Below are positions 4,856 through 62,160 of a stretch of DNA of 64,000 nt, piece by piece. Every line of letters starts with the position of its first letter. The first letter of the stretch is position 1. The notes under the pieces are model-generated. The model was not told the origin of the DNA. It ran no database searches and saw only the letters and a program-made list of their open reading frames with translations. The DNA is taken from IMG/VR virus record IMGVR_UViG_3300028275_000006, positions 62,001 through 126,000 of that record. One strand, 5' to 3'. A program made the position numbers and the translations under genes.

Positions 4856-5500
4856 TTAAATTTCGCTGATTAGGTACATTTCGTCCACTCTGCGTATCTT
4901 ATTGCCCAGGAATAGTCTGCACATTCCTAGGGTCTTTTCATTTGCGGCGTAAAAGTAGCCTTCGGAGTGGTATGTACGCTTTAGCAGTTTAATGCTGGGA
5001 ATCTGCTCTGCCCATGCGTGGAAACTTTCGCTAGAATCACGTAGAGGATTTACAGTTACTCTATACTTGTGCGTATACTTTTTAGATATAATACAGTTAG
5101 GGTTAGTTAATAGAAACTTCCTAACTTTATCGTCTGCAGGTTTAGTTACTTCTTTAACATGTCCTAATAGTTGAACAGCATCTAATAAAGAATCACTGTT
5201 GGTGTAAATGCTTAATGTGTCGCTTTCTACACGCAACAAAAAATCAGTTTCTTTATTAAGTAAATCTACAAGTTTGTTTATGTAGATTACATCACTGACT
5301 GTAGCATATTTCTTACGCCAGGATCTAAGTTGTACTCTACCATCCGGGACGGCTTCAATTTGATCACTAAGAATCTTGATTGAAGCCATTGCCCGAGCGA
5401 TAGTTCTGCTACGAAACTCCGAAGCAAAAACATTTATTACACTAATCTTGTTGACATATTTGTCAAAAAACAATTTAGATGTTTGCTTGTACAGTTTCAT
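4856..5500 (-). CDS. hypothetical protein (start probably ATG 5500)
   Basis: Overlaps the clpA 3' end; last gene of the dnaJ-def-clpA run. Confidence 0.6.
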   Translation of the reverse strand: MKLYKQTSKLFFDKYVNKISVINVFASEFRSRTIARAMASIKILSDQIEAVPDGRVQLRSWRKKYATVSDVIYINKLVDLLNKETDFLLRVESDTLSIYTNSDSLLDAVQLLGHVKEVTKPADDKVRKFLLTNPNCIISKKYTHKYRVTVNPLRDSSESFHAWAEQIPSIKLLKRTYHSEGYFYAANEKTLGMCRLFLGNKIRRVDEMYLISEI

Positions 5501-7715
5501 TCTGTAATTCGAGTTTAATTTCATCGTCTTCAACATTGATGTTTACTGCTCCACCCTGTTTCAGACCACCAAACAACATAAGTTTGGATAATGGACGCTT
5601 AATATCCTTATCGATTACACGTTGCAATGGGCGAGCACCCATCTTCTTATCAAAGCCCTTATCTACCAAGTAGTCAATTGCTTCGTTGCTGATTGTAATC
5701 TTAATGCCCTTATCCTTGACCTGTGTTTTTAACTCAACTAAGAACTTGCCAACAATTTTAATCATTGTTTCTTTGCTTAGTTTACCAAATGTAACAACAC
5801 CATCTAAACGATTGCGGAACTCTGGAGCGAAGAATTTCTTAAGTTCTTTATCTTCGTAGTCATTATCTTGACTACCAAAACCAATAACGTTCTTTTCAGC
5901 ATCTTGTGCGCCAAGGTTAGTAGTCATAATCAAAATAATGTTACGAGCATCTGCTACTTTACCATTAGATCCTGTTACAAAACCATTGTCCATAATCTGT
6001 AATAGGATAGTTGCTACATCTGGATGTGACTTTTCAATTTCGTCTAACAATAGAACACAATGTGGATTCTCTTGTAGTTTAGTAATCAACAAGCCAGCGT
6101 TTTCTTCAAAGCCAACATATCCAGGAGGGCTACCAATCAACTTAGATACGCTGTGTTTTTCTTGATACTCCGACATGTCAAAGCGAATAAGTGGAACACC
6201 TAACTGTTTACTAAGTTGTTTTGCGGCTTCAGTCTTACCAACACCAGTTGGCCCCATGAATACAAAACTACCCACTGGTTTATTATCAGATTTAAGTCCT
6301 GCTTGTGCTACAAGAATCTTATCAACGATTTCGTCAATGGCTTCATCTTGCCCATAAACTTCACCTTTAAGGTTCTTTTCAAGGTTAACAAGATTTTCGT
6401 TTTCTTTTTCCTTGACTGTGTCTTCGGGAAGTTTAACCATTTTTGCTAATTCGTATTGAATCTCAGGAACATCGACAATCTTATGTTCTGCGTTCTTAAT
6501 ATTGAAACGACTACAAGCCACATCAATTAGATCAATTGCTTTATCTGGTAATTTCTTATCTGTCATATATTTTACAGATAATTTAACTGCTGTTTCAATA
6601 GCCGCATCTGTAATTTCAGCACCGTGATGTTTTTCGTAATACTTCTTAATACCTTTAAGAATATCTACTGCTACTTCTGGAGTAGGCTCGTCAACAGTGA
6701 TGCGTTGGAAACGGCGCATTAACGCACGATCCTTTTCAAAGTACTTACGATATTCTTCCCAAGTAGTAGATGCAACTACTTTAATGTTGCCTTTGCTTAG
6801 AGCAGGCTTCATCATATTAGCCAAGTCATTGGCATTACCTTGTCCACCTGCGCCTGCGCCACTAATCATGTGTGCTTCATCGATGAACAATACAGTTTTG
6901 CCTTTGCCTGTTAGTGCCTTAAGTACTAATTTAAAACGTTCTTCAAAGTCACCGCGATATTTACTACCAGCAAGCATAGCACTAATGTCTAAGTTATAGA
7001 CTGTATATTCTTTTAAGAAGTCAGGAACAGCACCATTAATAATATTATGTGCTAGGCCTTCTGCGATAGCAGTCTTACCTACACCAGGGTCGCCTACTAA
7101 CAATACATTATTTTTAGTTCTGCGACCGAGCCCTAGCGCAATTTGTTCTAGTTCTTCAGTTCTACCGATAACTGGATCGATTTTATTTTTCTTGACTTGG
7201 TCATTGAGGTTAGTAGTAAATGCTTTCAGTGCTTTTTCACTTTGTGCATCTGTGACCTGTTCTTCTTCGTCTTCATCGATTTCGCTGTTAATAAAATCAG
7301 CAAACTTTTCACGATCCACGCCGCCCTTATTAATATAGAATACAGCGTAACTGCGCTTTTCGCTAAGTGCGCTCATAAACACATCTACAAGCTCAATGCT
7401 TTGACGTCCGCTGAAAAGGACTTGTGTGAATGCACGATTAAGAACACGCTCAACAGTTTGAGTCTTCTTAGGTTTAAATCCTTTGGGAATTGGATCTATT
7501 TTAATTTCGTCTAATTGATTTTTAAGATAGTGTTCGAGATTCTTTTTAATGTAATCCCCGTCACCACCGAAGTTTACAAGAAGTTCGTAGAACTTTTCTT
7601 CGCAGAGCATAGCAAAAATAAGATGCTCTAGCGTGACATATTCGTGTCCTAATTTTTTACAGTCTGCAACAGCCTTTTCAAAAACTACTTGCAGTTGATC
7701 ACTTGGTTCTACCAT
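5475..7715 (-). CDS. clpA: ATP-dependent Clp protease ATP-binding subunit ClpA
   Basis: Clp N-domain (HEYVTLEHL); two AAA+ modules (GDPGVGKT/FIDEAH; GPTGVGKT/LLDEIEK); GSKYRGDFEER pore loop; IGF ClpP-docking loop (VIGFG); GARPL; no ClpB middle domain. Confidence 0.93.
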   Translation of the reverse strand: MVEPSDQLQVVFEKAVADCKKLGHEYVTLEHLIFAMLCEEKFYELLVNFGGDGDYIKKNLEHYLKNQLDEIKIDPIPKGFKPKKTQTVERVLNRAFTQVLFSGRQSIELVDVFMSALSEKRSYAVFYINKGGVDREKFADFINSEIDEDEEEQVTDAQSEKALKAFTTNLNDQVKKNKIDPVIGRTEELEQIALGLGRRTKNNVLLVGDPGVGKTAIAEGLAHNIINGAVPDFLKEYTVYNLDISAMLAGSKYRGDFEERFKLVLKALTGKGKTVLFIDEAHMISGAGAGGQGNANDLANMMKPALSKGNIKVVASTTWEEYRKYFEKDRALMRRFQRITVDEPTPEVAVDILKGIKKYYEKHHGAEITDAAIETAVKLSVKYMTDKKLPDKAIDLIDVACSRFNIKNAEHKIVDVPEIQYELAKMVKLPEDTVKEKENENLVNLEKNLKGEVYGQDEAIDEIVDKILVAQAGLKSDNKPVGSFVFMGPTGVGKTEAAKQLSKQLGVPLIRFDMSEYQEKHSVSKLIGSPPGYVGFEENAGLLITKLQENPHCVLLLDEIEKSHPDVATILLQIMDNGFVTGSNGKVADARNIILIMTTNLGAQDAEKNVIGFGSQDNDYEDKELKKFFAPEFRNRLDGVVTFGKLSKETMIKIVGKFLVELKTQVKDKGIKITISNEAIDYLVDKGFDKKMGARPLQRVIDKDIKRPLSKLMLFGGLKQGGAVNINVEDDEIKLELQNETVQANI

Positions 7716-23206: not shown

Positions 23207-26200
23207 TTAGAATCTACCAACAACAATCTCAACTAGGCCTTCGCCTAAATCGTCTTTGTTCTCTAAACTCTTACCAATAATAGTTCCTACAGATGGAGTA
23301 TTATTAACTATTGCGTAACCTTTCTTAGCCGCAGTAACTAGAATATCACCTTTCTTAACCTTACCAAGTACTTTACATGGCAAGCGTCCTGTTAGGCCTA
23401 CTGCTAGTGGATGTTTTCCTGCTAAATCAGAGTTCATCAAATGCGCTGGTTTTTCAGAAATAACACCAGCAACTCTAGTATCGTTATGTTTGTCAGTGAC
23501 TGTAATTTCTTCATCACCACCAAATACTACAACAGTACCAGTTTCATATTCTGCATCTGACAAGTATTTTTCAGCCAAGTCAGCGTAACGAGCACTTGTA
23601 GCAGTACCATTGAATAATGTTGCGTATAGTGTGTCGGTAAATGGATTACAATAAATGCCGCCTGTGCCATATACACTATTACCGCTACCCCATAACATTT
23701 GATATGTGCTGTTACTATCGTTGTTATAGTTAATTGTAACTGTACTTGCATTACCTGCAATGTTCATTGACTGTCCGCTAATGAACGAAGCAACTTTTGC
23801 GGCTGTAGCAGAGCGATAGTAGTTATCGCCAAACTTAGCCATTATGTATGTAATGGTGCCACCACTTACATCGTCGCTACTGTTAAAGTAACTGCTGTTA
23901 ATATAACGTCCGTTGAAGTCACCGTTAACGTCACGTGCAACTAATGTGCTTCCTGTGGCCGCACTTGTTGCGTTAGTTTGGATTGTACGTGTTGTACTAC
24001 CATCGTAACTTGAACCAGCAGTGAAACTTAGGTATGTGCTTAGACCCAGTGTACCAGCCAATGTACCAGTAACAGCACCGTAGATAGTTCCACCAACACG
24101 TAGGTCGCCACTGATACCTGCACCGCCTGTAACCTGTAATGTACCAGTACCGTTGGCAGCACCTGTTACTGCTTGGTTAGCAGTTAAGGTTACTGTATCG
24201 TTAGCAGACAACAATTTAAAATAACCATTACCTCGAGTAGTTGCACCAATGTTTACGTTGTTTATTGATCCGACACTGGCCGGAGCAATAGTTACAGTAC
24301 CGGTACCACTTGGACTTAGTGTTACGTTAGCATTAGCAGGACTAAATGTTGTAGTGCTTGCTGATGTTATTGCGTTTGCACTTAAAGTACCAACTGTGGT
24401 AATAGTTGTGCCTGCTGAAGTAGTTCCAACTGCTGTTAAGAAGTCTACAGCACCGGGTGTAGTCATAGTCAGTGTAGTTCCGCTGACGCTTAAGGTCTTA
24501 TAACTACTTGAAGTTAAGTCTAACTGTGCTACAGCAACACGGCCGCTACCATCAGATTGTATCAATGAACTAGCCTGAGCACTTGTACTAATGTTTGTTG
24601 TACTGTAAGCGTTTGGACCAATAGCAGTTAAAATCATTGCACGACCATTGCTACCTACTGATCCTGGAGCAAATGACGCATTCTTAATACCATCGCCGTT
24701 GGTAACAATCTGTCCAGATGTTACTTGACGAGGATATGTAGCACTGCCTGTATTATTACCTAAATAAGTGTCGTTGGCAATATACTGTAATTTAGTTTGT
24801 AATACACCTGTAGTTGTTGAACTGGATGTTTGCAACTCAATCCAACCGTTAGTTGCAGTAAATTCTGTACTCTTGAAACTTGCTAGACCCAAATCTGCCT
24901 GTGCAATACTTGTAGCATTTGCACGAGTAGTTGCTTTATTCATGTCTAACTTACTTTGTGCAATAGCCGCACTAGAATTAACGTCTGCGTTAATAATTAC
25001 ATTAGACTTGATGTTTAAAGCAAGATTTTTAGTTCCAGGAGTCAATGAAGTTTGAATATCGCCTGTGCTAACTGTTTCAGCGTTGATCCATTTAACTCCG
25101 TTATAAACTAATAAATCATTTAAACTTCTTGCTGGACTTGTTGAAGTATCAACTCTGTCATCGCTTAGTTCTTGATTTCTAACATATAACTTGTTAGCCG
25201 CATCTGTATCAGCAGTAGGACTACCTAAGTTAGCAATAACAAATCCGCCCATGTCCATTGGATCTGGACCAGTAAATGTTAACAAACCAGCACGATCCAT
25301 GTAGCCTGGACCAATTAGTGCAGTTGGATCTAGAACGTTATTTGTACGATCCATTCCAAGACGTCTGTCAATGTAACCTTGTGTTGCCGCTTCAGTTGGT
25401 AGCGCATCGTTAGCACCGTCAGTAAATCTATCATCGTTTGAGAATTCACTAACTGTAACACCACGCTTAAATCCTAGACCGTCTAAGTTTGACAACGCAA
25501 TAGATGCCGCAAACGTTACACGACCAGTACCTTGGTCAACTGTAAAGAATCGACCTACACGGAAAATACCGTCTTGGTCTGTGGTTACATAGAAACAACG
25601 TCCTCTTGTACGTTCTGTAACTTCACGTGCTTGGTTAGGTTCTTTTGGAGCACCGTAAATCTTGCTTGGGAAGTTAGTATCGTTATAGCCTCCAGTACCA
25701 ATGTCTAAGAAGTCATGTCCTGTAACACGGCAAGTACTAATACGTACAATAACTTCTGCTGGCTCTGTGCTAGATAAACCTGCACGTAATGTTGGAGGTT
25801 CAGAAATATCCAAGTTAAAGTCTGGATCAACTGGTGTATTAATACCGCTAGCAGATGTTCCTGCTAGACACTTATCAGCGACATCTTCTATTTCAACATA
25901 AGCGTAACCGGCTAATAACCCCATGTCAGTGTAACTTAAAATTTTATGAATCTTGCCATCCCAGGCAGTAATCATATCTCCGGTATTAAGTCTGCTTTCA
26001 ATGTCAGTTTCGTTTACACGGTCGATGGCAATCTTAGTATCACCAGCAGTCGACCCCATAGTCTGTCCAACATTATCTGGATCAGCGTTAGATACATTTT
26101 CTGCATTGACTAGTAATTTTACATAATCGTAAGTTGTATCGAAGCCTAGAATACTTTCGTCTACCGCAAGGTCTTCATTTAATGGACCTTTGTTACCGTA

Positions 26201-29200
26201 TGCTAACACACGATAAACAATAGCACCTGCATCGGGATCACCGACGAATGTCAATGCAGTACTTGGACGAACCGGGTTAGTGTCATCGACTTCGTAGAAC
26301 TTAAAGTTTTGGTTACTGCGAATAATAATTGGTTGGTCATGTGACAATGCTACGGCCAAGCCGTTTGTAGCAGTATCATTATTACCGCCAGTGTTGATGT
26401 TTAGACGTAGAACGTTGCCTAGGCCCCATAGGCTAGCCAAACCGCCTGCCCATGTTCCAGGATTGGTACTGTACTCTAGTGTAACACTAGATGTTGTACT
26501 AGCGGTAGCAGTATATACACCGTTAAACCCAGAAGTTGTTGATCCACTAACTGTGTAAGGTACACCAATTCTTGGTGTATATGGTTCAGCAGTGAACGAA
26601 TATGTTACGTAATATTTTCCGCCTGTTGGCCCAGTCTTAAGTGGTGTTCCAGAAACAGACTGTGCCAAGGTACTTGAAACATCAGTTACACCTGCAACTT
26701 CGTAACGAGCAATACCGTTACCAATAATAGTTTTAACAGTGATAAAGAAGCCCGAACCTGTTCCGCCTACGTTTGTATTACTGCAACTTAAAATATCACC
26801 TTCGCTGTATCTAATACCTGCGGCAACTAAACCTACAGTAGTTACTACACCTCCTGACACAACAATGTTAGCAGTGATACCACTACCAGTTCCGCCTGTT
26901 AACGGAACATTAATATATGTGCCGTTGGTATAACCACTACCACCGATTAAACTAGTTGCGTCTAGTTCTGTAACAACGCCAGCGCCGTGGTTAATTTCAA
27001 CTTCAGATACGTTGTATGGTGAGTAATCATGTTGGTAGAAAAATACCTGTAAATCACCAACATCGTTGTCTGTGCTATAAATTCCTTGTTTGTAAACACG
27101 AGCAACCTGCATCATGTTGTCTGACAAGTTACACTTATCTGGAACTTCTAATGGATCACTACCTTCAGAAATAATACCATACTCGCCGTGTGCGTTAGAA
27201 CCGTTCAATGAACGAATCTGTCCACCGTTGTTGGCATAATAAGCAGTCCAGCAATAGTAACTGAACACAGAAACTGTTTCAATCAAACCAATGTTTGTAG
27301 CAACCAGTCCATAACCTAAGTCGTTAATCTGTGTAAAGTCATTTGAACACATACTGGTGTTACCAGCACTTAGTAGCATAAAGTCTTTTACATACTCTAT
27401 GGTAGTAGTGCCAGTGCCAAATGCACCCGGGTCACTTGGATAACGTAGTGTCATCGAAGTTAGTGTAGATGCTACACACTCTACAGCATCATTGTTATAG
27501 TTAGAGTTGCTGTTGCCAAACACTCTATAACGTGTTTTAGTTCTAGGAGCAGTAGTTCCAACGGGCGTAACAATGCTGAATACTACATCGTAAGATCCAT
27601 CCCCGACGCCCGAGTCTGCCTTGCTAGTGAAGGTAGAAATAGTATATTCTAAGTCGTTAGTTACAGGAGTAGTTGTAGAAAGAACTAATCTGTATGTTGG
27701 GTAAACGATAGGTTTGGCACCAGTTAATACTGTTGAAACATCTACTTCCGGGTCTGTAATAACTTCGTTTAATAAATCAAACAACTGTCCTGCTCGTGTA
27801 ACAAATGCAGAGCCGTCGTAGTCAGAACTGAATACCTGTGATACTCTATTCTCTACAGCAACATCGTTAATAACTTGATAATTTAATGTTGGTGGAACTT
27901 GATTCAATACAGCCTGTGCAACTTCCTTGGCATAGGCAAATGAATCTAATGTTTGTGATAATTGATTTTCTAATACAACACGGCTACTAGCAGTACCTAC
28001 ATAGTAACGCTGTGCGGCACGAATTGTTAAGTATGTTCCGCCATATAACAAGTCTGCTGAAACTGCGGCAACAATAAAGCCAACGTCTCGTGAACAAATT
28101 TCTTCATTGTAAACTAATGTGTTTGTATAATTAGCATCGATATAATTTGTTACAGCAGTTTGTAAAGTTGACTTAGCACTTTGTAGTGCAGAATTTGCAC
28201 CAGTTAAGCCAGCACTTACCCAAGCAGTACTTGGAGTAATTGTTGAAGGAACAGAACCGAGCCCAAGGTCGATAATTGTTAAAATTTCTCCAATACGCTG
28301 TCCAGCAGTAGCACTGGCAGAACTGTTACCTGGAGTACCGCGAACCTGCGCAACACCACCTTGTAATGCAGTAATAGGTAAGTCTAATGCAATGTCTTCA
28401 ACTAGACTTTGTAGATAACCATATGCGGCCAATGTTGCTGGTTTCTCAGGAGCCGCAACTTGTAGAGTTGTGTAAGAATAATAAGCCTTACCAGCAATCA
28501 ATGTTTGAATGTTACCACCGTAGGTTAGGTCGTGATATAGTGCATCTAAAATGTATTCTGTATCACGTAAGCATACAGCAGGGTCATAACTTAATCCAAC
28601 ATAGTTGTTAGAAATATATTGAATTACTTCTGCTTTAATAAATTCTCTGTTAGATTCAATCAGTGTTCTAGCACGATTATAATTTACATCGTAGCCTGTT
28701 GGATCAGGAGTTACGATTGCAGGTTCTTGAGTTAGTCCGTTAGTAATAACATCTAAGAACATATTCATGTTGGTAGTTACACTAGTAACTGCGGTAGCAC
28801 TTGCACTAACAACAGATAATATTTCATCTCTTAAGAAAGTAAATGCGTCAATAGTTGCGGCTTTTTGTACGCCAACAGCCACAGCGGCTGAAGCTCTGTA
28901 ATAAGATCTTGCCGCTGTAATTGTCTGGAAGTTGCCGCCAAACATTAAGTCGTAACCAATAGCATCAATTACATAACCCACGTCACGTTGACATGTAGCA
29001 GAATCATAGGTAAATCCTACATATTTGTTGTTAATGTAGTTAATAACTTCTGCTTTGATAAAATCTTTATTATCGACTAACAATGCACGAGCACCACGAG
29101 CACTTGGCGGATTTTCTAAAATGCCAATGAACTCGTCAAACAAATCTTGAATAGTTGCTTCTGCTAAGCCGCCATCGGTAATATCGGTATCGATATACTG

Positions 29201-32200
29201 TAGAACAGATTGTTGATATCGTACTGTTGGATCTTCGTTATTAATAACATTTAATATCAATGTTTCAATGTAGTTAATAGCCGCAAGTGTGTTGGCCAAC
29301 TGCTGGTCAATAACAATCTTAGAACTAGCACTAGCATTGAAGTATGCTAGAGCTGCCTGAACTGTTTTTAAATTACCGCTATAATAAATGTCGTGTGCAA
29401 TAGCATCGCAGATGTATCCAGTGTCACGAGCACAAGTATCTTGGTTGTAACTATATCTTTGTTGTAGATAAACTAATGTGTCAGACTTGATACTTTCTTT
29501 GTTGTTTAACAATAATGTTCTGCTGTCTGTTAACGAACCAGACACACTATAGAAAGTTGGATATTCAATAGTAGGAGCCGCTTCACGTCCGCTTAAAATA
29601 ATAGTATTAATGTAGCCCATTAACACACCTACTCTAGCAGATTCAGTTGCGCTACCTGGATTAACTAAATCAAATACCTGTGTTACAGCACTTTGTTTAG
29701 GGAACGGAACAGGAGTATTAGTAACAACTAACTGTGCAACACCACTGGCATAGGCCAATGCTTCTGTGGTTTGCAATGTTTGTCCAGGAATTTGCAAACT
29801 TCCGTTACCATCGTAATATTGATATCCGGCTTCTACAGTTGCCGAGTTACCTTCATATAGTAAGTCGTAAACAATAGAATTTAAAATGTATGCCGCATCT
29901 CGACGACACTTGTCTTCGTCGTAGACAAAGTCTGGATATTCTTCAGCAATCCAGGCAATAATTTCTTCTTTAATAAATTCAATGTTATCTAAAATAAGAT
30001 TTTTTGCATTTACTCTTGAAGTAGGAGCACCTGACGGATCTGACCATGTAATTGTATCTGATGAAATAATACCGTTAGCAATGATATCTGTTATCTCATC
30101 AAAACTTGCTTCTGCTCTTAGACGTGCAACAGAGTTACCGGCTAATACATCAGAAATTAATGTTCTTGTATAGATTAACGCATCTAAGTATTCATCTTTT
30201 TGGTCTGGAAGAATACTGTATTGTGTGCCGCGATAGTATGATTGTCCAGCACGTACAGCATTAAAGTTTGTACCTAGTGCTAGATCGTAACCTAGTGCAT
30301 CAACAATCAATCCAACGTCACGAGCACATTTGGTTTCGTTGAATGTAAATGGTGGACTTAGTTCTGTATTAATATAACCAATAACTTCTGCTTTGATAAA
30401 GTCGATGTTTCGACGAATTAATTTTCTAGCATTTCCATAGCCGTTGCCGTCATCAGTGTATGCTTCAACTTTAAAAGTTCTTCCGTCAATAACAAATGAG
30501 CAAGGAGTTGTTGGAGCACGTTCACTGCCTGTTACTAGGAATTCTGTGTCGCTGATTTTTTCTTGAATCTTAAGAGGAACGTTACCAGCAAAGCCGTCAA
30601 CATACTGTCCACCAGCAAAACGTTGTTTGTTTAGTGATCCTGCAAAAGAACCGGACTGTTGAATATATGCAGACTTGGTTAAAATTTGACCTTCTGGGTC
30701 AAGTACCATCATAAAGCCGCCGTGGCCTTGACAGGTAATCTGACGAATAATAACAGCATCGTTACATAAGAATACGTCAAGGTCTCTGTTGTTCTTTGGT
30801 TCACTTAAAATATCAGACGGGTCTGTTAGATAGTGATAACCGTATTCTGTGCTGGTTAAAGTTAATCCGTCAAATGTTTTATCTCTACGGAACCAAACGT
30901 CAACCCATGGACTGCGACTTGGGCGGTCCGCTGGACGAACAATACATCTACGCAATTCGTCACCAACGATAGCAACGTTTGGCGGGACACGAATTGGATA
31001 GTCTTCAAAATAGATACCAGATTCAACAACAATACTAATTTGGATATTTTTAACTGCTTGGTCAAACTCTAGGTTTTCGCCAGGCACAAAATCACCAATA
31101 ACATCCTGCAAGTCAAAATAGTCTTCGCCGATACTTGAACTACCATCGGAGCCATAGTATTGATAAATGAAACCCTGTGCGCCGCTGGTACGTCCAACAA
31201 CAATCTTACCGGAGACAATATCTGGTTTTGGTAATTGACCTTGGTCAACACGAGAACCACCGTTGTTAGTAAAGTAAACACGAGTAGTACCAGATGCACC
31301 AGATTCAATTCTTGTAACTTCAGAGAACGCTTCACCGCCACCGTAGGCAATTAACTGACGATAAGGACCAGTTTCCCATGGTGCATCATTTACTAATTGT
31401 TCTGCTTTTTGACAGGCTTTGTTAATACTTGCATAAGCATAAGAACGATCGCGTCCTTCTTTTCCACGCGGTGTACGTGCCTGTGTGTCGTCACCGCCTG
31501 TGGTAACGTACAAGTTAAATCTGCTTGAATAACTTGAATTATCTACATAATATTTTGTAGCGGCTTGTAAGTCATCTTCTCCGTTAGGCGTACCAGCACC
31601 TGCAAGTCCGCCTGGATGATCTGCTAAGTTTAGCACACCAGTCATATCGCCGCCAGTTTTTAATACAACTTCTGCGGCACGTGGTGCTTGGTTACCTGTG
31701 GCGTTTGCTGGCACATTTAAGTGACCAGTCATTGTGTCGCCTGTAATGTTTACATATTTGGAGTCGGCATAACCTTTGTTAATAGCAAAGGAATCTATGC
31801 TATAAAGAGTTTCGTGCTGTGTGTTGAAACTATTAACAGCAGTTTGGAAATCTGTTTGATTAATAGGACTGCGTAAGCCGCCGATTAATTGATTACGTGC
31901 ATCCAGCGCATATTGTAATTTTGGTAATGGGTCGTCCTGTAATTTAGAACTTAATGTATCAATTTTAACGGAACCGTAACTGGTAATAGTACCAGTTGCC
32001 GCACTAGTTGATAAGTTTGTTCCTGCGTTTGTATATACTAGAACATTGTCTACTGTGCCAGTTAACAATAGGGCAGAAGTAGTGTTAAATGAAGTATTGT
32101 CTGTGGACGCGATTGTAACTCGTTGTCCAGGATCTAAATTGTGGTTTGCTGAAAGTGTAATAGTGGCAACGTTGCTACTTCTTGATACACTAACAATATC

Positions 32201-32485
32201 AAAGGTTTCTTGCTCGGAATAATCAAACTGGATAGTACCGTTAGGACTGAAAAAGTCTTTGAATACTAAACTAGTACCAATAGAATTAACTACTGGAATC
32301 TTATTACCTTGTCCTACTAATGTATCAGGAGTATCGCTAAGGTCAGTGAACTTTAAAAATCCGCCTTGACCGAAAACAGCATATAACTCTTGGAAGTTTT
32401 CATTCGTTTTTCTAAACGCTTCACGGATACTATCACCAGTTCCGTCATTACCTGATACGCCGATGTCGACTATTTTACGTGCCAT
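23207..32485 (-). CDS. giant (~3,090 aa) tail/baseplate structural protein with six ~150-aa repeats and a C-terminal chaperone-like domain
   Basis: gp9/gp10-like N-terminus GNDGTGDSIREAFRKTNENF; AATKYYVD fibre motif; C-terminal ATSARYADLAEKY; GGAG RBS before ATG 32485. Confidence 0.8.
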   Translation of the reverse strand: MARKIVDIGVSGNDGTGDSIREAFRKTNENFQELYAVFGQGGFLKFTDLSDTPDTLVGQGNKIPVVNSIGTSLVFKDFFSPNGTIQFDYSEQETFDIVSVSRSSNVATITLSANHNLDPGQRVTIASTDNTSFNTTSALLLTGTVDNVLVYTNAGTNLSTSAATGTITSYGSVKIDTLSSKLQDDPLPKLQYALDARNQLIGGLRSPINQTDFQTAVNSFNTQHETLYSIDSFAINKGYADSKYVNITGDTMTGHLNVPANATGNQAPRAAEVVLKTGGDMTGVLNLADHPGGLAGAGTPNGEDDLQAATKYYVDNSSYSSRFNLYVTTGGDDTQARTPRGKEGRDRSYAYASINKACQKAEQLVNDAPWETGPYRQLIAYGGGEAFSEVTRIESGASGTTRVYFTNNGGSRVDQGQLPKPDIVSGKIVVGRTSGAQGFIYQYYGSDGSSSIGEDYFDLQDVIGDFVPGENLEFDQAVKNIQISIVVESGIYFEDYPIRVPPNVAIVGDELRRCIVRPADRPSRSPWVDVWFRRDKTFDGLTLTSTEYGYHYLTDPSDILSEPKNNRDLDVFLCNDAVIIRQITCQGHGGFMMVLDPEGQILTKSAYIQQSGSFAGSLNKQRFAGGQYVDGFAGNVPLKIQEKISDTEFLVTGSERAPTTPCSFVIDGRTFKVEAYTDDGNGYGNARKLIRRNIDFIKAEVIGYINTELSPPFTFNETKCARDVGLIVDALGYDLALGTNFNAVRAGQSYYRGTQYSILPDQKDEYLDALIYTRTLISDVLAGNSVARLRAEASFDEITDIIANGIISSDTITWSDPSGAPTSRVNAKNLILDNIEFIKEEIIAWIAEEYPDFVYDEDKCRRDAAYILNSIVYDLLYEGNSATVEAGYQYYDGNGSLQIPGQTLQTTEALAYASGVAQLVVTNTPVPFPKQSAVTQVFDLVNPGSATESARVGVLMGYINTIILSGREAAPTIEYPTFYSVSGSLTDSRTLLLNNKESIKSDTLVYLQQRYSYNQDTCARDTGYICDAIAHDIYYSGNLKTVQAALAYFNASASSKIVIDQQLANTLAAINYIETLILNVINNEDPTVRYQQSVLQYIDTDITDGGLAEATIQDLFDEFIGILENPPSARGARALLVDNKDFIKAEVINYINNKYVGFTYDSATCQRDVGYVIDAIGYDLMFGGNFQTITAARSYYRASAAVAVGVQKAATIDAFTFLRDEILSVVSASATAVTSVTTNMNMFLDVITNGLTQEPAIVTPDPTGYDVNYNRARTLIESNREFIKAEVIQYISNNYVGLSYDPAVCLRDTEYILDALYHDLTYGGNIQTLIAGKAYYSYTTLQVAAPEKPATLAAYGYLQSLVEDIALDLPITALQGGVAQVRGTPGNSSASATAGQRIGEILTIIDLGLGSVPSTITPSTAWVSAGLTGANSALQSAKSTLQTAVTNYIDANYTNTLVYNEEICSRDVGFIVAAVSADLLYGGTYLTIRAAQRYYVGTASSRVVLENQLSQTLDSFAYAKEVAQAVLNQVPPTLNYQVINDVAVENRVSQVFSSDYDGSAFVTRAGQLFDLLNEVITDPEVDVSTVLTGAKPIVYPTYRLVLSTTTPVTNDLEYTISTFTSKADSGVGDGSYDVVFSIVTPVGTTAPRTKTRYRVFGNSNSNYNNDAVECVASTLTSMTLRYPSDPGAFGTGTTTIEYVKDFMLLSAGNTSMCSNDFTQINDLGYGLVATNIGLIETVSVFSYYCWTAYYANNGGQIRSLNGSNAHGEYGIISEGSDPLEVPDKCNLSDNMMQVARVYKQGIYSTDNDVGDLQVFFYQHDYSPYNVSEVEINHGAGVVTELDATSLIGGSGYTNGTYINVPLTGGTGSGITANIVVSGGVVTTVGLVAAGIRYSEGDILSCSNTNVGGTGSGFFITVKTIIGNGIARYEVAGVTDVSSTLAQSVSGTPLKTGPTGGKYYVTYSFTAEPYTPRIGVPYTVSGSTTSGFNGVYTATASTTSSVTLEYSTNPGTWAGGLASLWGLGNVLRLNINTGGNNDTATNGLAVALSHDQPIIIRSNQNFKFYEVDDTNPVRPSTALTFVGDPDAGAIVYRVLAYGNKGPLNEDLAVDESILGFDTTYDYVKLLVNAENVSNADPDNVGQTMGSTAGDTKIAIDRVNETDIESRLNTGDMITAWDGKIHKILSYTDMGLLAGYAYVEIEDVADKCLAGTSASGINTPVDPDFNLDISEPPTLRAGLSSTEPAEVIVRISTCRVTGHDFLDIGTGGYNDTNFPSKIYGAPKEPNQAREVTERTRGRCFYVTTDQDGIFRVGRFFTVDQGTGRVTFAASIALSNLDGLGFKRGVTVSEFSNDDRFTDGANDALPTEAATQGYIDRRLGMDRTNNVLDPTALIGPGYMDRAGLLTFTGPDPMDMGGFVIANLGSPTADTDAANKLYVRNQELSDDRVDTSTSPARSLNDLLVYNGVKWINAETVSTGDIQTSLTPGTKNLALNIKSNVIINADVNSSAAIAQSKLDMNKATTRANATSIAQADLGLASFKSTEFTATNGWIELQTSSSTTTGVLQTKLQYIANDTYLGNNTGSATYPRQVTSGQIVTNGDGIKNASFAPGSVGSNGRAMILTAIGPNAYSTTNISTSAQASSLIQSDGSGRVAVAQLDLTSSSYKTLSVSGTTLTMTTPGAVDFLTAVGTTSAGTTITTVGTLSANAITSASTTTFSPANANVTLSPSGTGTVTIAPASVGSINNVNIGATTRGNGYFKLLSANDTVTLTANQAVTGAANGTGTLQVTGGAGISGDLRVGGTIYGAVTGTLAGTLGLSTYLSFTAGSSYDGSTTRTIQTNATSAATGSTLVARDVNGDFNGRYINSSYFNSSDDVSGGTITYIMAKFGDNYYRSATAAKVASFISGQSMNIAGNASTVTINYNNDSNSTYQMLWGSGNSVYGTGGIYCNPFTDTLYATLFNGTATSARYADLAEKYLSDAEYETGTVVVFGGDEEITVTDKHNDTRVAGVISEKPAHLMNSDLAGKHPLAVGLTGRLPCKVLGKVKKGDILVTAAKKGYAIVNNTPSVGTIIGKSLENKDDLGEGLVEIVVGRF
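27750..30450 (-). repeat. six tandem 140-159-aa repeats, consensus N(x)2-FIKAEVIxYI...C-x-R-D-x-G-Y-I-x-D-A-I-x-Y-D-L-x-Y-G-G-N
   Basis: Cys codons at 30326, 29906, 29432, 28991, 28571, 28094 (spacing 140/158/147/140/159 aa). Confidence 0.85.
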
Positions 32486-32515
32486 TGAATACTCCAAAAA
32501 AGACTTTGTATCCAA

Positions 32516-32868: not shown

Positions 32869-33087
32869 ATGTTGTCATTATTAAAAAAACTATTTGGCGG
32901 TAAGTCTCAAGAAACCGTAGCAGAAGCACCATACAAGGTTGAAGCACCTAAAGTGGAAGAAACTAAAGTAGAAGCACCTGCTCCAGTTGCTGAGGCACCT
33001 AAAGCAGAAGCACCTAAGAAAAAGGCCGCTGGCCGTAAACCAGCAGCCGCAAAAAAGGCTCCTGCTAAGAAAGCCCCTAAGAAGTAA
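32869..33087 (+). CDS. small Ala/Lys/Pro-rich protein
   Basis: MLSLLKKLFGG amphipathic start, EAPK repeats, histone-H1-like KKAPAKK tail. Confidence 0.7.
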   Translation: MLSLLKKLFGGKSQETVAEAPYKVEAPKVEETKVEAPAPVAEAPKAEAPKKKAAGRKPAAAKKAPAKKAPKK

Positions 33088-34096
33088 TCGCTTGTTTGTG
33101 TAGTGCAAACGAGGCTAGATTTTTAGCCTTGCTTTCGCACATAATATCAAACTGATCCCAAAAACTCAGTGCCCATTCGTTCACTGCTGTGTTCCAGTAG
33201 AAGTTCGAATGTGCTCTGAGTTTTGCTTTTTTGTGTCCACTTTCCATTAGTGAAAGTAGGGAGGGAGCGGAGTCTGTGGCATGGCCATTAAGATGCTCTT
33301 CCCGTGAAACACTATAATGTATGACAGGGCGCACACCACGCCAACTATCGATAATCCTTTTAACACGGTCGTCAGTTGCTTCAATATATTCTCCAGTATT
33401 AATCCAATGATGGTGTATGTCTAGCACCAAAGCGAGATCTTTGGCAAGTTCGAGGCTTGAGTCGATTCCCCAGGTGATTTCGTCATTTTCGATGGTGATG
33501 CAGTTTCTTGCTTCGGGGGAAAGTCTCGGGAGGGCACTTTTAATACCGGCTGGACCGGCTCTACCGGCGATGTGGACGTTGATCTTAAAGTCCTGAAATC
33601 TTTTACCATACCCCATCCATCTCGCCATATCCGCATGATACTCAAACTCCTCTATAGAACGCTGAACAATATCAGGATTGTCGCTTGCCAACACAGTAAA
33701 TTGACCAGGATGAAAACTGAGACGAACGTTGCGGGAACGAGCAATATCTCCCACTTCTGCAAAATGTTTTTGGGCGTATGTCTGCACATCATTTTCACGC
33801 CAAAACCAGCACCAAGTAGGCTCAGTGTAGACAGGAAGAATATCACTGCTAAGGCGTACCATACGTAAGTCATCATCTAATTGCCCTACCCTTTCTACTA
33901 ATAATTTAGTTGAGTTGATATTTTGTTCAAGCAAAGACCACAATTTTTCAACAGCCACATCTTTGGTTTGACGGTTAAGCCAAGCCACAGTTGTTGCTCC
34001 TGTATTGTATTTCTTACATTCATCTTTGGGTTTAATACCGTCTACTTGATCTGGACGGTCGATCCATTTACAGGCAAAGCCAATACGTTTGTTCAC
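33077..34096 (-). CDS. uvsE: UV damage endonuclease UvsE/UVDE (GTG start proposed)
   Basis: RIGFAC, RLSSDILP, RLSFHPGQF, IENDE, LDIHHHW, HYS, AHS, MCESKAK. Confidence 0.9.
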   Translation of the reverse strand: MNKRIGFACKWIDRPDQVDGIKPKDECKKYNTGATTVAWLNRQTKDVAVEKLWSLLEQNINSTKLLVERVGQLDDDLRMVRLSSDILPVYTEPTWCWFWRENDVQTYAQKHFAEVGDIARSRNVRLSFHPGQFTVLASDNPDIVQRSIEEFEYHADMARWMGYGKRFQDFKINVHIAGRAGPAGIKSALPRLSPEARNCITIENDEITWGIDSSLELAKDLALVLDIHHHWINTGEYIEATDDRVKRIIDSWRGVRPVIHYSVSREEHLNGHATDSAPSLLSLMESGHKKAKLRAHSNFYWNTAVNEWALSFWDQFDIMCESKAKNLASFALHKQAITS

Positions 34097-34124
34097 AAAA
34101 CTCTCGATAAAGTTACGATAATAT

Positions 34125-34153
34125 ATTATAGCATCGTTACTGCCAGTTGTCAA
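34125..34153 (-). promoter_or_regulatory. sigma70-type promoter for uvsE
   Basis: TTGACA-17-TATAAT. Confidence 0.8.
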
Positions 34154-34832
34154 CAATGATTTGGTCCTGGACATCTTCGGGATTTGGTGTTCCGTGGAAC
34201 GCAATTACGCTACAATCCGGGTTCATAGACGGGCTACGCACCGTCTTAAACACGTTTTTACCCTGAACCCTAATCAACTCTTCCCGCTGTCTTATTTCCC
34301 ACTTGTAGCTCTGTATCCAAGTTTCAGGGAAAAATTTTATAATACTTTTGTGTGACTGCCAAATCCAATCTTGATCACCTGGGAACTTTTTGGTTAACGC
34401 TGGATTGTTTTCCAAATCGTCCCAAATATTGCTGAAATGGTTACTGGGCCAACGCAGTACAGCACTACCTAATTTTGGTGGCACACGTCTAAACACTCTG
34501 CCTACATCTTCCAAACCAACAAAATTTCCAGGCAGGTACGAAACCAATTTGTCTATATTACCTACAATAACCATATCCAAATCAAAGAACAAATTTACAT
34601 CACCGTCTGGAAAATGTCCTTGTTTAAAGATATATGGTTTCCACCACCAACCAGAAAACAGTCCTTTGGGCAAGGGTTTAATTTTAATTGCAGGATTTAA
34701 GTTTGTAGGATCTTCAGTAAAGCAATAAAAATCAAAAGGCACAGTTAAGTGCCTTGAGACCATATTGTAAAGTTTGTTTACATATTCCGGACCGTACTTT
34801 GTACCGTGTTTTAAACTAATGACGTTTAGCAT
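34137..34832 (-). CDS. GT-A fold glycosyltransferase-like protein
   Basis: KHGTKYGPEYV, CFTED, WWWKPYIF, FFDLD (DxD), GDQDWI, FHGTPNP. Confidence 0.7.
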   Translation of the reverse strand: MLNVISLKHGTKYGPEYVNKLYNMVSRHLTVPFDFYCFTEDPTNLNPAIKIKPLPKGLFSGWWWKPYIFKQGHFPDGDVNLFFDLDMVIVGNIDKLVSYLPGNFVGLEDVGRVFRRVPPKLGSAVLRWPSNHFSNIWDDLENNPALTKKFPGDQDWIWQSHKSIIKFFPETWIQSYKWEIRQREELIRVQGKNVFKTVRSPSMNPDCSVIAFHGTPNPEDVQDQIIVDNWQ

Positions 34833-34993
34833 TACCAGTGCCTTATTACACCCGCTACAATGAATATGTTAGTTATTATATAAGTCAATACAATAACAGT
34901 TCGAATCAATGCAATCCTGTCCGCTTCTTGTTTGGTAACACCGGCTTTCTCTCCTAGTGCCTTGGCCCATAGTCTCCAAAACTTACGTACCAT
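34832..34993 (-). CDS. small membrane protein (53 aa) of the WRLWAKALG type
   Basis: Hand translation MVRKFWRLWAKALGEKAGVTKQEADRIALIRTVIVLTYIITNIFIVAGVIRHW; fills the gap between queD and the GT gene. Confidence 0.75.
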   Translation of the reverse strand: MVRKFWRLWAKALGEKAGVTKQEADRIALIRTVIVLTYIITNIFIVAGVIRHW

Positions 34994-35540
34994 CTTTATA
35001 AAAAACACTACGACTCTTAGGAGTTTCCCACCATTCGATGCTGTGAACTTTGACGCCTAATTTTTTCATTTTGACATCAACTAATTCTGCCATCCAACTA
35101 CTTAGGTGTTCCGATGTTGGAACAAAGTCTACTACCATAAATCCTTCGTAGTATTCTTGTTCAGGACCAGACATATTAGCATAATAGATTGGATGAATAT
35201 GCCAACCTGCAACGTATTCGGTTTCTGGAACATACACTGGAATTAGCTCGACTTTTTCTCCCAGCATCTTAGTAAACAGCGGATCGTTTTTATCAATAAT
35301 AAATTGATGATCAATATAAGTGTTGATCCATTTCTTTAGCCATTCTAAATGTCTAAAGTCAGTGACCATTCCAGTTTTATCTAATCCGTCGCCTGTTAAA
35401 TGAACCTGCATTTTACCTTCGTGTCCATGTAAATGTCTGCAAGCACATTTCAAGTCTGCCGCATATTCGCCGTTTAGTGTTTGTGTATGAACACGATGTC
35501 CATAACAAAATTCAAATGTTTTATCAATGATCCAAGTCAT
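34983..35540 (-). CDS. queD: 6-carboxy-5,6,7,8-tetrahydropterin synthase QueD (PTPS family)
   Basis: FCYGHRV, CRHLHGH, GMVTDF, IDHQF, PTSEHL, WETPKS. Confidence 0.88.
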   Translation of the reverse strand: MTWIIDKTFEFCYGHRVHTQTLNGEYAADLKCACRHLHGHEGKMQVHLTGDGLDKTGMVTDFRHLEWLKKWINTYIDHQFIIDKNDPLFTKMLGEKVELIPVYVPETEYVAGWHIHPIYYANMSGPEQEYYEGFMVVDFVPTSEHLSSWMAELVDVKMKKLGVKVHSIEWWETPKSRSVFYKDGT

Positions 35541-35613
35541 CTCTTGCCCTTTTTAAGTTAAGTTTGATGACACGCAGAGTATTTAAAGAGGGGTGAGCGT
35601 CTAGTCCTCTATT
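35541..35613 (-). ncRNA. candidate preQ1-I-like riboswitch/pseudoknot leader of queD
   Basis: Leader AAU-AGAGG-ACUAGACGCUCACC-CCUCU-UUAAAUACUCU-GCGU-GUC...: P1 AGAGG/CCUCU, loop ACGC pairs with downstream GCGU; begins at the predicted +1 of a sigma70 promoter. Confidence 0.5.
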
Positions 35614-35618
35614 GATAC

Positions 35619-35647
35619 AGTATATAGGTATTACATTATACTGTCAA
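35619..35647 (-). promoter_or_regulatory. sigma70-type promoter for queD
   Basis: TTGACA-17-TATACT. Confidence 0.8.
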
Positions 35648-36206
35648 TAGTTTTGAATTTAACATTTGCCAAAAGCCAACTACTGGGCATCTGCCATTCT
35701 GTATTGTTAAAAACTACAAAGTACTTATCGGGGAAACATTCAAACACGCGAGCAATCTGGTATATCCAATACCTTGGATCCACTGCGGGTTTAGTAGCAT
35801 CTGCATAGTTAGCAGTATCTTTGTAAATGTTATTGACAAACTGTGTTGGGCTGTGTAGATCAAAACCAAATAAGTTTACATGGTCGTCTAGCATAGCGGC
35901 TAACAAAACAGCATACGGACCACTGCCCCATTGAAAAGGCTCGTCAGGTCTAGTAGTGCCCTGGTAAGGCAAGTCTGGTAATATTTTTACAGGATTGTTT
36001 TTGTAGAAGTGTGCCCAATCTTTTCTAGTATAGATTGTGCCAGCAAAGTGGCTATCCAGTGCTTCTTGTACCATACGTCTGTCTACACAGACTAAATGGT
36101 CGACTGAGTAGTCTCTATGTATGGCGTTACAGCCAACTTTAGTTTCTGTAAGTGAATTTAAATCTAAATGTTTTCTGGATTCGCCGTTGCCAAATACAGA
36201 TATCAT
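35631..36206 (-). CDS. GNGxS-motif Rossmann-like protein (sialyltransferase/Maf/MptE-like)
   Basis: MISVFGNGESR, VGCNAIHRD, LVCVD, SGPYA, LFGFD; ATGA overlap at 36203-36206. Confidence 0.55.
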   Translation of the reverse strand: MISVFGNGESRKHLDLNSLTETKVGCNAIHRDYSVDHLVCVDRRMVQEALDSHFAGTIYTRKDWAHFYKNNPVKILPDLPYQGTTRPDEPFQWGSGPYAVLLAAMLDDHVNLFGFDLHSPTQFVNNIYKDTANYADATKPAVDPRYWIYQIARVFECFPDKYFVVFNNTEWQMPSSWLLANVKFKTIDSIM

Positions 36207-37816
36207 CTTCCGCCAATATAACCGAACGGCTCCCAAGTACCAGGAGTACCGCTCATTACGCAGATCCATCCAACGTAACTAGTTCTTACTGGACTGCTAT
36301 TCCAAATGATATCGCCTTTGTTCCAGGCTTTTTCTGTAGGAGCACCTACGCCGTGTGCAAAGCGTTTACCATTGATAACCATCATTCCGTCTACGCTGAA
36401 TGCCGCATCTTCTTGTGGGTTGGTAATGTTTACACTTAGTTGTCCATAGATGTTTACATTTCTAGTTGTATTATTTTTGTCACCGATACGGATACTGCCA
36501 GCGTTATCTACTTCAAAGTCTTCGCCAATGCCAAACTTATCTGCTGTAATACCACTGCTGGATAATCTTAATGTGCCCGAGCCGTCTTTGATTGTTACAG
36601 AATTGTTAATTGTAACTACGCTGTCTTGTACAGTAATGCTGTCTGACAAGTTTACTGTTCCAGCAACATCTAATGATGTCAGTGTGCCTAAACGAGTAAG
36701 ACTAGAGTTAACAACGCTAACTCCTAGGTCAGTTCTGTTTAATACACTCTTACCGTCGATCCAGAATTCTTTGTTAATTGCTAATTCAAGACTTTCTGAA
36801 GAATAGATTCTGTCAGGGTTTGGAAGCATAATAAACTGACGTGTACCACCTTCGCCCTTCCATTGCATACCCTTGCCAAAAATACTGTTATCCTTACTGG
36901 CTATAAATTCTATTGGACTAGTTTTTTCGATTCTGATGTCAGATACAATGCTGTCTACTTCTAATCTGCCGTGAACTTTGACTATTGCGCCTTTGCTCTT
37001 AGCATTGCCAAACTCTGTAGTGTTTCCTGATACTGTAATACGTCTTGTGTTATCGGTAACAATACTGAAACTGTTACTGCCCCAAGTACCTACAAAACCC
37101 ACTGAGTCTTGATCCGCACCTAAAATTACTTCTACATTATTGTCAACGGCACTGATAACTGCGTTTGGTTCTTCTGTATTGACACCTAGTCTTCCTAGGG
37201 CATTAACAAAAACTGTGTCACCTAGGTTTGTTTCGCCTGTAACACGTAGTTCTTCTAAAGGACCCACTGTGCGTAGGTTACTGTCACGTACTGAATTACC
37301 TAATCTTGTGCGCTCTAAAACATCTGTGCCTTCAATTTGATACTTAGAACCTTTGTATAAATCAATAGATTCTGTGCTGAAAATTCTTTTTGGGTTTGCT
37401 TTAAAAACAAACTGATAACTTACATCTGGGCTGTCCCATTGCAAGCCTTTACCATCTAAATCGCTGAGTTGTCTGCTGGCAAAAGAAATGGATTTTGTAA
37501 ATGATTCTAGGCTTTGTTCTGAAATAACATTCTTAACTAACAGCGTATCTGCTTCTAATTTGCCGTTAACTTTTAAGTTAGCAAATTCGCTAGTACCTGC
37601 GGCAACAATTTTTCCAGCGCCAAGAACGCCTTCTACGTGAATGTTTCCGCTAATTCTGTCAGCACTTAATACGCCAACCTGTACACCTTTATCTGTAACA
37701 ATCATCTGCTCACGTGTAGCAGTATCAGAAATGCCCTTAGATAGTGTGCCACCGTTAGCGGCTGATTTTAGTGCGTCACCTAAATCTTGAAGAATTTTGT
37801 CGATGTTTGAGCTCAT
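36203..37816 (-). CDS. fibre-like structural protein with internal duplication (start ATG 37816)
   Basis: Two copies of KGxQW...QF...NPxRIxSxES...SxLxxxGxL; C-terminal GDIIWN...GWIC...GTPGTW. Confidence 0.7.
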   Translation of the reverse strand: MSSNIDKILQDLGDALKSAANGGTLSKGISDTATREQMIVTDKGVQVGVLSADRISGNIHVEGVLGAGKIVAAGTSEFANLKVNGKLEADTLLVKNVISEQSLESFTKSISFASRQLSDLDGKGLQWDSPDVSYQFVFKANPKRIFSTESIDLYKGSKYQIEGTDVLERTRLGNSVRDSNLRTVGPLEELRVTGETNLGDTVFVNALGRLGVNTEEPNAVISAVDNNVEVILGADQDSVGFVGTWGSNSFSIVTDNTRRITVSGNTTEFGNAKSKGAIVKVHGRLEVDSIVSDIRIEKTSPIEFIASKDNSIFGKGMQWKGEGGTRQFIMLPNPDRIYSSESLELAINKEFWIDGKSVLNRTDLGVSVVNSSLTRLGTLTSLDVAGTVNLSDSITVQDSVVTINNSVTIKDGSGTLRLSSSGITADKFGIGEDFEVDNAGSIRIGDKNNTTRNVNIYGQLSVNITNPQEDAAFSVDGMMVINGKRFAHGVGAPTEKAWNKGDIIWNSSPVRTSYVGWICVMSGTPGTWEPFGYIGGR

Positions 37817-61930: not shown

Positions 61931-62160
61931 GGTTGAAAGTTGTCCCTTCCTTTTGTATGCTTACTGATTTCGGCTAAGGTTGCCCTTAGCATTTGAATTT
62001 CCATTGCGGCTTCTTCTAACAAGTTAGCAATCTTGTCGGGCTTACCTTCTGTGACTGCTAACCTGCCAGGAATCTGCCTACGTATCTCTGCTCGTTTATA
62101 CAAGCGGAACACTAGGCTTTGCTCTGCTACAGGCAAATGACTTTCATCTTCACATCTCAT
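61927..62160 (-). CDS. hypothetical protein (start ATG 62160)
   Basis: ATGA overlaps on both sides. Confidence 0.6.
   Translation of the reverse strand: MRCEDESHLPVAEQSLVFRLYKRAEIRRQIPGRLAVTEGKPDKIANLLEEAAMEIQMLRATLAEISKHTKGRDNFQP

Follow-up and report, generated by a model that had tools for sequence, protein, structure and literature searches.

The 64,000-nt stretch analysed here (referred to as the window; positions 62,001 to 126,000 of IMG/VR record IMGVR_UViG_3300028275_000006) is phage DNA. It encodes a baseplate wedge, tail fibre proteins, a DNA ligase and a Lon-like protease, and it is identical to IMG/VR contigs of up to 270 kb. On its minus strand, a promoter-like sequence is followed 8 nt later by a 42-nt element (35610-35569) and then, after AUC and a 25-nt linker, by a queD gene that starts with ATG at 35540. 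Read 5' to 3', the element runs from AGAGG through ACUA, GACGC, UCACC and CCUCU to UUAAAUACUCUGC and GUGUC. The features of the locus, all on the minus strand, are as follows.

35642-35647, minus strand: -35 hexamer TTGACA
35619-35624, minus strand: -10 hexamer TATACT, after a 17-nt spacer; predicted start of transcription at about 35612
35606-35610, minus strand: P1 5' strand AGAGG, pairing with 35591-35587
35602-35605, minus strand: L1, ACUA (consensus n-C-U plus 0-9 variable nucleotides)
35594-35601, minus strand: P2 5' strand GACGC plus the extension U-C-A
35592-35593, minus strand: L2, C-C (consensus n(n)C), the last C invariant
35587-35591, minus strand: P1 3' strand CCUCU
35577-35586, minus strand: L3, UUAAAUACUC (consensus nnAnAAAy-U-C)
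35569-35576, minus strand: P2 3' strand, U-G-C plus GUGUC (the latter, P2b, at 35573-35569)
35566-35571, minus strand: anti-start arm GUCAUC, which shares GUC with the P2 3' strand and is seen in the MFE folds, forming a conserved helix with 35541-35536
35547-35550, minus strand: Shine-Dalgarno (SD)-like AGGG in the loop of the platform hairpin, inferred from the sequence
35536-35541, minus strand: GAUGAC, the start codon and flanks, 3' arm of the sequestering hairpin
34983-35540, minus strand: queD (PTPS/QueD family, 185 aa), the regulated gene
33024-33048, minus strand: terminator-like hairpin (11 pairs followed by a T run) after the UvdE-like gene, inferred to end a queD / 58-aa / glycosyltransferase / uvdE transcription unit

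The 185-aa ORF is a PTPS/QueD protein (PF01242, E = 2e-27; phrog_2389), and its best NCBIfam model is QueD, although below cut-off. The promoter scores 11 of 12 and is one of only two sites at 11/12 or better in 12 kb. On its own this would not be significant, because the total number of promoter-like sites in the region is no higher than in shuffled sequences (32 versus 32.2). The preliminary description had reported this promoter, leader and gene; its transcription of the sequence is accurate and its observation is confirmed, with one correction to the P2 register given below.

We first asked whether the leader recurs. QueD homologues in viral contigs carry the same leader in about 30 of 80 loci, with compensatory changes in P1 (AGAGG/CCUCU, AGUGG/CCACU, UGCGG/CCGCA and AGACG/CGUCU). 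A scan of viral contigs with a degenerate pattern of the loop nucleotides gave at least 120 matches, and 107 of the 120 examined have five of five P1 pairs. When the same pattern was applied to 185,579 bacterial and archaeal genomes, only 1 of the 121 matches examined has a perfect P1 and none looks like the motif; these matches cover an estimated 9% of that collection, so absence from bacteria is not shown. Two sister patterns of equal information content, scanned over the whole viral collection, returned about 90 matches each, which is the chance background. In total, scans of viral contigs that did not exhaust the collection gave 229 distinct copies, every one in front of a queD operon. A covariance model built from 129 unique copies finds exactly one copy in the window (59.9 bits).

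A lack of conservation or covariation of P1 and P2 in homologous leaders had been proposed in advance as a result that would refute the riboswitch candidate, and the opposite was found. In a model-based alignment of 100 sequences, P1 is 96.8% paired and P2 (GACGC:GUGUC) is 84.5% paired, with changes on both sides in four of the five pairs of each helix. The covariation score is 0.531, compared with 0.171 in shuffles (0 of 500 reach the observed value) and 0.05-0.13 when the partners are slid. Several of our alignments were built from pattern-selected sequences, which introduces ascertainment bias. G.U pairs are frequent, so the structure belongs to the RNA of this strand. The P2 register preferred in the preliminary description, ACGC:GCGU, is only 56.7% paired and was rejected. 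The data therefore support an H-type pseudoknot, in which the loop of the P1 hairpin pairs with the 3' tail.

To test whether the conserved loops are an artefact of the search pattern, we repeated the scans with parts of the motif left free. A scan that fixed only P1, L1 and L2 recovered UCUGC (the end of L3 and the start of the P2 3' strand) at its fixed position in 75 of 76 true motifs. A scan that fixed only P1 and L3 recovered n-C-U at the start of the loop, with C-U conserved in about 108 of 113 loops, and UCA-n(n)-C at its end, with the last C invariant. A second QueD subfamily, retrieved purely by protein homology, gave at least 600 stretches; among the best 80, which are at least 88% identical to the query, all 75 loci with enough 5' flank carry the motif.

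This last set revealed a further base pair. Five of its sequences have UCG in L2 together with UCCGC in L3, and when L2 position 3 and L3 position 11 are counted as a pair, the set contains 48 A-U, 5 G-C and 0 unpaired; the neighbouring C-G is invariant. We then scanned the viral contig collection for each combination. The G/C double variant gave at least 120 matches, 81 of them with a perfect P1 (55 unique, with queD downstream). Complete scans for the A/C mismatch and the G/U wobble gave 91 and 99 matches, of which 1 and 0, respectively, are true motif copies. On a FastTree of 286 associated QueD proteins, the A-U/G-C state changes at least 28 times, compared with about 55 times when labels are shuffled, so the switch happened many times or the leaders recombine. 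P2 therefore continues across an invariant U.C mismatch (U35596.C35574) into C-G (C35595-G35575) and a strictly Watson-Crick R-Y pair (A35594-U35576), and the true L2 and L3 are n(n)C and nnAnAAAyUC. Intolerance of G.U at this pair, next to the P1-P2 junction, is what one expects of a pair that lines a binding pocket, although this step is inference. We also considered whether the L1 C-U forms isosteric triples with the C-G/A-U extension, but there is no co-change of L1 in the G-C variants.

Every one of the 151 instances with a callable downstream ORF lies in a queD operon. In 148 queD is the next gene: 146 downstream ORFs form one cluster, from which all eight diverse representatives tested match PF01242, and two more were artefacts of start-codon calling. 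In the other three, one inserted gene (a cupin, a methyltransferase or an unknown) is followed immediately by queD. The associated QueD proteins are as little as 22% identical to that of the window, so the RNA is far better conserved than the protein. BLAST searches of the locus and of the leader against 50,697 phage records gave no real match, and our covariance model found no motif upstream of queD in Vibrio phage 2.275.O, Pseudomonas phage PA5oct or Campylobacter phage CP20.

In 207 unique instances, the start codon lies 21-84 nt (median 33) after UCUGC. When the tail alone is folded, at least 4 nt of positions -14 to +3 pair with the first 14 nt after UCUGC in 200 of 207 instances, and at least two of the five P2b nucleotides are part of that hairpin in 199 of 207. 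The overlap between P2 and the hairpin is only 2-5 nt. The duplex energy between each tail and its own ribosome-binding site averages -8.6 kcal/mol, compared with -6.8 for swapped partners and -4.5 for shuffled tails. At least four unrelated platforms share this design: GUCAUC..GAUGAC, the type found in the window, and CAUUG..CAAUGG, which hide the AUG, and CCUAUG..CAUAGGAG and ACUCC..GGAGU, which hide the SD. In the AUG-hiding types, the nucleotide before AUG and the first nucleotide of codon 2 (-1 and +4) covary with the arm, as C-G/U-A and U-A/U-G/C-G, although these sequences had been selected for a paired AUG and the 99.6% pairing is inflated. Blocking P2b costs the hairpin 4.45 kcal/mol on average; in the window the hairpin goes from -9.6 to -3.0, whereas the P2 duplex is worth -4.4, so the hairpin should dominate unless something stabilizes P2. 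MFE-based accessibility of the ribosome-binding site changes only modestly when P2b is blocked (0.54 to 0.62 unpaired). We also considered pairing of UCUGC with the platform, because AGAG precedes AUG in one platform type, but UCUGC is conserved across unrelated platforms and this idea was rejected.

A promoter of the form TTGAY-N16-18-TAnAnT is present in the 70 nt upstream of only 39 of the 207 unique copies, mostly from the clade of the window. In 35 of these the -10 ends 5-11 nt before P1, and a control stretch inside queD has none (0 of 207). The other 168 copies are intercistronic, which fits control of translation rather than of transcription. A start site downstream of the hairpin had also been named beforehand as a result that would refute the riboswitch candidate, and the start inferred here has not been observed directly: four riverine metatranscriptome assemblies contain the region, but their contigs break at 35559-35602, because several co-occurring strains share this 43-nt core with different flanks, and they give no 5' end; DNA carry-over is not excluded.

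The preliminary description had interpreted the leader as a variant of the preQ1-I riboswitch, and this interpretation is partly supported. Of the features that define preQ1-I (PMC10622847), the motif has the H-type pseudoknot and a cytidine at the 3' end of L2, next to the P1 3' strand, which is invariant in 229 unique copies; its equivalence to the preQ1-I specificity base is by position only. It also shares a 5-bp P1 topped by two near-invariant G-C pairs and an A-rich first half of L3. The E. coli yhhQ aptamer even ends its loop with UCAC before CCC, much like UCAnC before CC here. Three other features are absent. The first L1 nucleotide is U, A or C (86/84/55) rather than a conserved ligand-reading U, with invariant C-U at positions 2-3 instead. 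The four to five adenines that directly precede the P2 3' strand and read the ligand in all three preQ1-I types are replaced by invariant y-U-C followed by the Y-G-C of the P2 extension, the A-rich part lying 5' of these. Finally, the P2 3' strand does not include the SD or control a terminator, but overlaps the arm that pairs with the SD or AUG, which predicts activation and not the repression implied by the feedback logic of the earlier interpretation. P2 is also longer, with 7-9 positions rather than 3-4. Like the known preQ1-I riboswitches (types I-III, with the B. subtilis queC, T. tengcongensis and E. coli yhhQ aptamers), which have a P1 of 5-6 bp, the motif is a minimal H-type pseudoknot linked to the queuosine/7-deazaguanine pathway and predicted to act on translation, but in this analysis it was found only in phage contigs, always at queD.

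A comparison with the Rfam preQ1 models had been suggested at the outset. Rfam 15 gave no family for the motif, RF00522 included, either at gathering score on the whole window or at E<=10 on the leader and on 14 other motif-bearing loci. However, the validated E. coli yhhQ preQ1-I type III aptamer also gave no hit at the same settings, so the scan has little power and does not settle whether the motif belongs to this family. Our own model gives the E. coli aptamer no score. We therefore regard the motif as working like a preQ1-I-type pseudoknot aptamer, but not as a demonstrated member; it may be a distant offshoot or an independent class.

Beyond reasonable doubt, this is a functional, phage-borne, queD-specific pseudoknot RNA. 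The interpretation we favor, as more likely than not, is that the 42-nt element is the aptamer of a translational ON riboswitch whose P2, of 4-6 variable pairs plus the extension, competes with the sequestering hairpin. In this model, the hairpin wins in the absence of ligand and queD is not translated; when a ligand stabilizes P2, the anti-start arm is withdrawn, the ribosome-binding site opens and QueD is made. The comparative analysis establishes the structure, its conservation, its exclusive association with queD and the overlap between P2 and the hairpin, whereas ligand binding, the identity of the ligand and the direction of regulation in vivo are inferred; no binding or expression experiment exists. 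ON control of a biosynthetic gene is unusual, no ligand is obvious, and translational coupling or a protein partner could use the same structure at the intercistronic copies.

Nothing in this analysis identifies the ligand; within this model, it is most likely a metabolite of the GTP to 7-deazaguanine pathway. The invariant cytidine suggests a 2-amino-4-oxo (guanine-like) face, which every intermediate from GTP to preQ1 has. Known ON switches usually sense the substrate or an excess compound that the gene product consumes, and by this analogy the candidates are H2NTP (the FolE product and QueD substrate), GTP or guanine. A positive-feedback response to a deazaguanine product is not excluded, and all of this is inference.

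An alternative is that the element is a divergent subtype of the preQ1-I class (a 'type IV') that binds preQ1 or preQ0, with an inverted expression platform. In addition to the shared features above, L3 plus the P2 extension is 13 nt, the same as the distance from P1 to P2b in the E. coli type III aptamer, the regulated gene belongs to the preQ1 pathway and the negative Rfam result is weak evidence. We nevertheless consider this unlikely, because of the missing A-tract, the variable first L1 nucleotide, the far longer P2 with its conserved U.C mismatch, the lack of recognition of the E. coli aptamer by our model and the platform, with which preQ1 would activate its own synthesis.

A somewhat less likely alternative is a ligand-independent or protein- or ribosome-dependent element that sets the translation level of queD, mediates coupling to the upstream cistron or binds a phage or host protein. 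The small size of the RNA, the absence of a nameable ligand and the 168 copies that sit directly after an upstream gene are consistent with this view, and some queD homologues do without the motif and are simply coupled to the upstream ORF. However, about 13 unpaired or non-covarying nucleotides are nearly invariant across many phage lineages, which is typical of a small-molecule pocket; the internal pair that tolerates A-U or G-C but neither G.U nor A.C points to a geometry-critical core; the unrelated platforms all keep the P2b overlap, as expected for a switch; and the clade of the window places the element at the very 5' end of its own transcript, where coupling cannot apply. Chance resemblance or a plain hairpin without function, to which the unremarkable single-sequence fold of the window leader (z = -0.57) might point, is refuted by the hundreds of covarying copies in a fixed position relative to queD and by the chance-level matches in the estimated 9% of the cellular genome collection that was covered.

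Other known systems are less similar. The preQ1-II and preQ1-III riboswitches belong to the same pathway, are pseudoknotted and control translation, but they are larger HLout pseudoknots with an embedded hairpin and a three-way-junction pocket (PMC11602147); the element has no embedded hairpin and no Rfam match was found. The add adenine riboswitch of Vibrio vulnificus, a translational ON switch, has the same logic, in that an aptamer strand pairs with the ribosome-binding region in the free state and is withdrawn upon ligand binding, but it has a different fold (a three-way-junction purine aptamer), ligand and gene context. The THF-II riboswitch (folE motif) acts on a neighboring step of GTP-derived pterin metabolism (PMC6800512), but is a simple hairpin with internal loops, found in bacteria upstream of folE and acting as an OFF switch, with no sequence or structural similarity to the element.

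It is possible, although we hold this only tentatively, that the motif represents a riboswitch class not yet described, carried by phages (mostly large freshwater ones), that activates translation of QueD on binding a pathway metabolite with a guanine-like face, such as GTP, H2NTP or a 7-deazaguanine base, through a pocket different from all three preQ1 classes. It would be the first riboswitch dedicated to a phage nucleobase-modification pathway. Riboswitches in phages are rarely described, none is known to control the 7-deazaguanine pathway that shields phage DNA from restriction, and our literature searches found no description of a queD-associated or phage 7-deazaguanine riboswitch and, among the papers searched, none that mentions both a riboswitch and dpdA. 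If this RNA, present in at least hundreds of uncultured phage genomes, binds a metabolite, it adds a new aptamer fold variant for a guanine-like ligand for comparison with the much-studied preQ1-I pocket, provides a natural example of inverted logic built on the smallest riboswitch architecture and gives a handle on when and why phages switch on base hypermodification. The strict A-U/G-C pair and the invariant U.C mismatch are concrete structural predictions.

The window itself has no folE or queE homologue detectable by tblastn with representatives from related loci; the rest of the genome (270 kb or more) was not examined, and whether this phage has a DpdA was not checked. Across the motif-bearing loci, recurrent neighbors within 6 kb are GTP cyclohydrolase I (34 loci), a QueE-like radical-SAM protein (35 loci), a Gpt-like phosphoribosyltransferase (22 loci), a UvdE endonuclease (55 loci), and glycosyltransferases and sugar-nucleotide enzymes. 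No QueC or DpdA family appeared among the frequent neighbors, and FolE plus QueD plus QueE without QueC is the gene set described for phages that make CDG-derived bases (PMC10516641).

The genes that flank the candidate riboswitch–queD unit, and the promoter-like sequences close to it, are as follows, in coordinates of the window:
35631–36269, minus strand, and 38 related loci: a 212-aa protein of unknown function, the upstream neighbor
33077–34204, minus strand, and 55 related loci: a UvdE-type UV-damage endonuclease
23207–32515, minus strand: a single ORF of 3102 aa
34125–34153, minus strand: a perfect sigma-70 consensus
35635–35640, minus strand: a second, perfect TATAAT hexamer

The 212-aa protein is a conserved upstream neighbor that matches only phrog_30607 and has an N-terminal GNGxS motif, whereas a 231-aa glycosyltransferase (phrog_1962) is a conserved downstream neighbor. 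The most frequent downstream neighbor of the unit is the UvdE-type endonuclease (PF03851, E=4e-41). Why a UV repair nuclease travels with queD is unexplained. The 3102-aa ORF lies directly downstream of the queD–uvdE block, and because relatives in other loci begin with a T4 gp9/gp10-like N-terminal domain, it is probably a giant baseplate or fiber protein. In addition, a Gpt-like (xanthine/guanine) phosphoribosyltransferase often follows queD, as at positions 3800–4333 of locus L167 (one of the related loci) and in 21 other loci. This hints that these phages may convert a deazaguanine base into a nucleotide rather than relying only on a transglycosylase.

The perfect sigma-70 consensus (TTGACA-17-TATAAT with an upstream TG, 12 of 12) lies inside the 3' end of the 231-aa glycosyltransferase ORF, just upstream of the UvdE-like gene, and may be an internal promoter for uvdE. 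The second TATAAT hexamer near queD is found directly after the TTGACA and overlaps the end of the upstream ORF. With a weak TTAAAT 16 nt upstream, it could give a transcript about 18 nt longer.

We also compared the aptamer between strains and between loci. Metatranscriptome contigs (RNA runs X19–X22) from several co-occurring strains share the exact 43-nt aptamer core at window positions 35559–35602 but diverge on both sides, so the assemblies break there. The aptamer is the most conserved stretch of the locus between strains. A subgroup of aptamers, from related loci L403, L405–L407, L410, L413, L415, L416, L420, L424, L425, L428, L430, L434, L435 and L437, has a loop end that is one nucleotide longer (UCAUUC or UCACUC instead of UCAnC), and two of these also have CGC instead of nCU at the start of L1. 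In three phages (loci L182, L189 and L197), a gene has been inserted between the aptamer and queD, encoding a cupin, a DUF1698-like methyltransferase or an unknown 243-aa protein, and the inserted gene takes over the putatively regulated start site.

As a positive control for the Rfam searches, we scanned the E.coli K-12 yhhQ leader (locus L438, positions 6166–6212), which contains the experimentally validated preQ1-I type III aptamer. The Rfam 15 scan did not report this aptamer, even at E≤10 on a 401-nt stretch, a blind spot to be kept in mind whenever a negative Rfam result is used for small aptamers. Elsewhere in the window, at 5475–7715 on the minus strand, the phage encodes a full-length Lon-like ATP-dependent protease (phrog_4871, E=2e-250).
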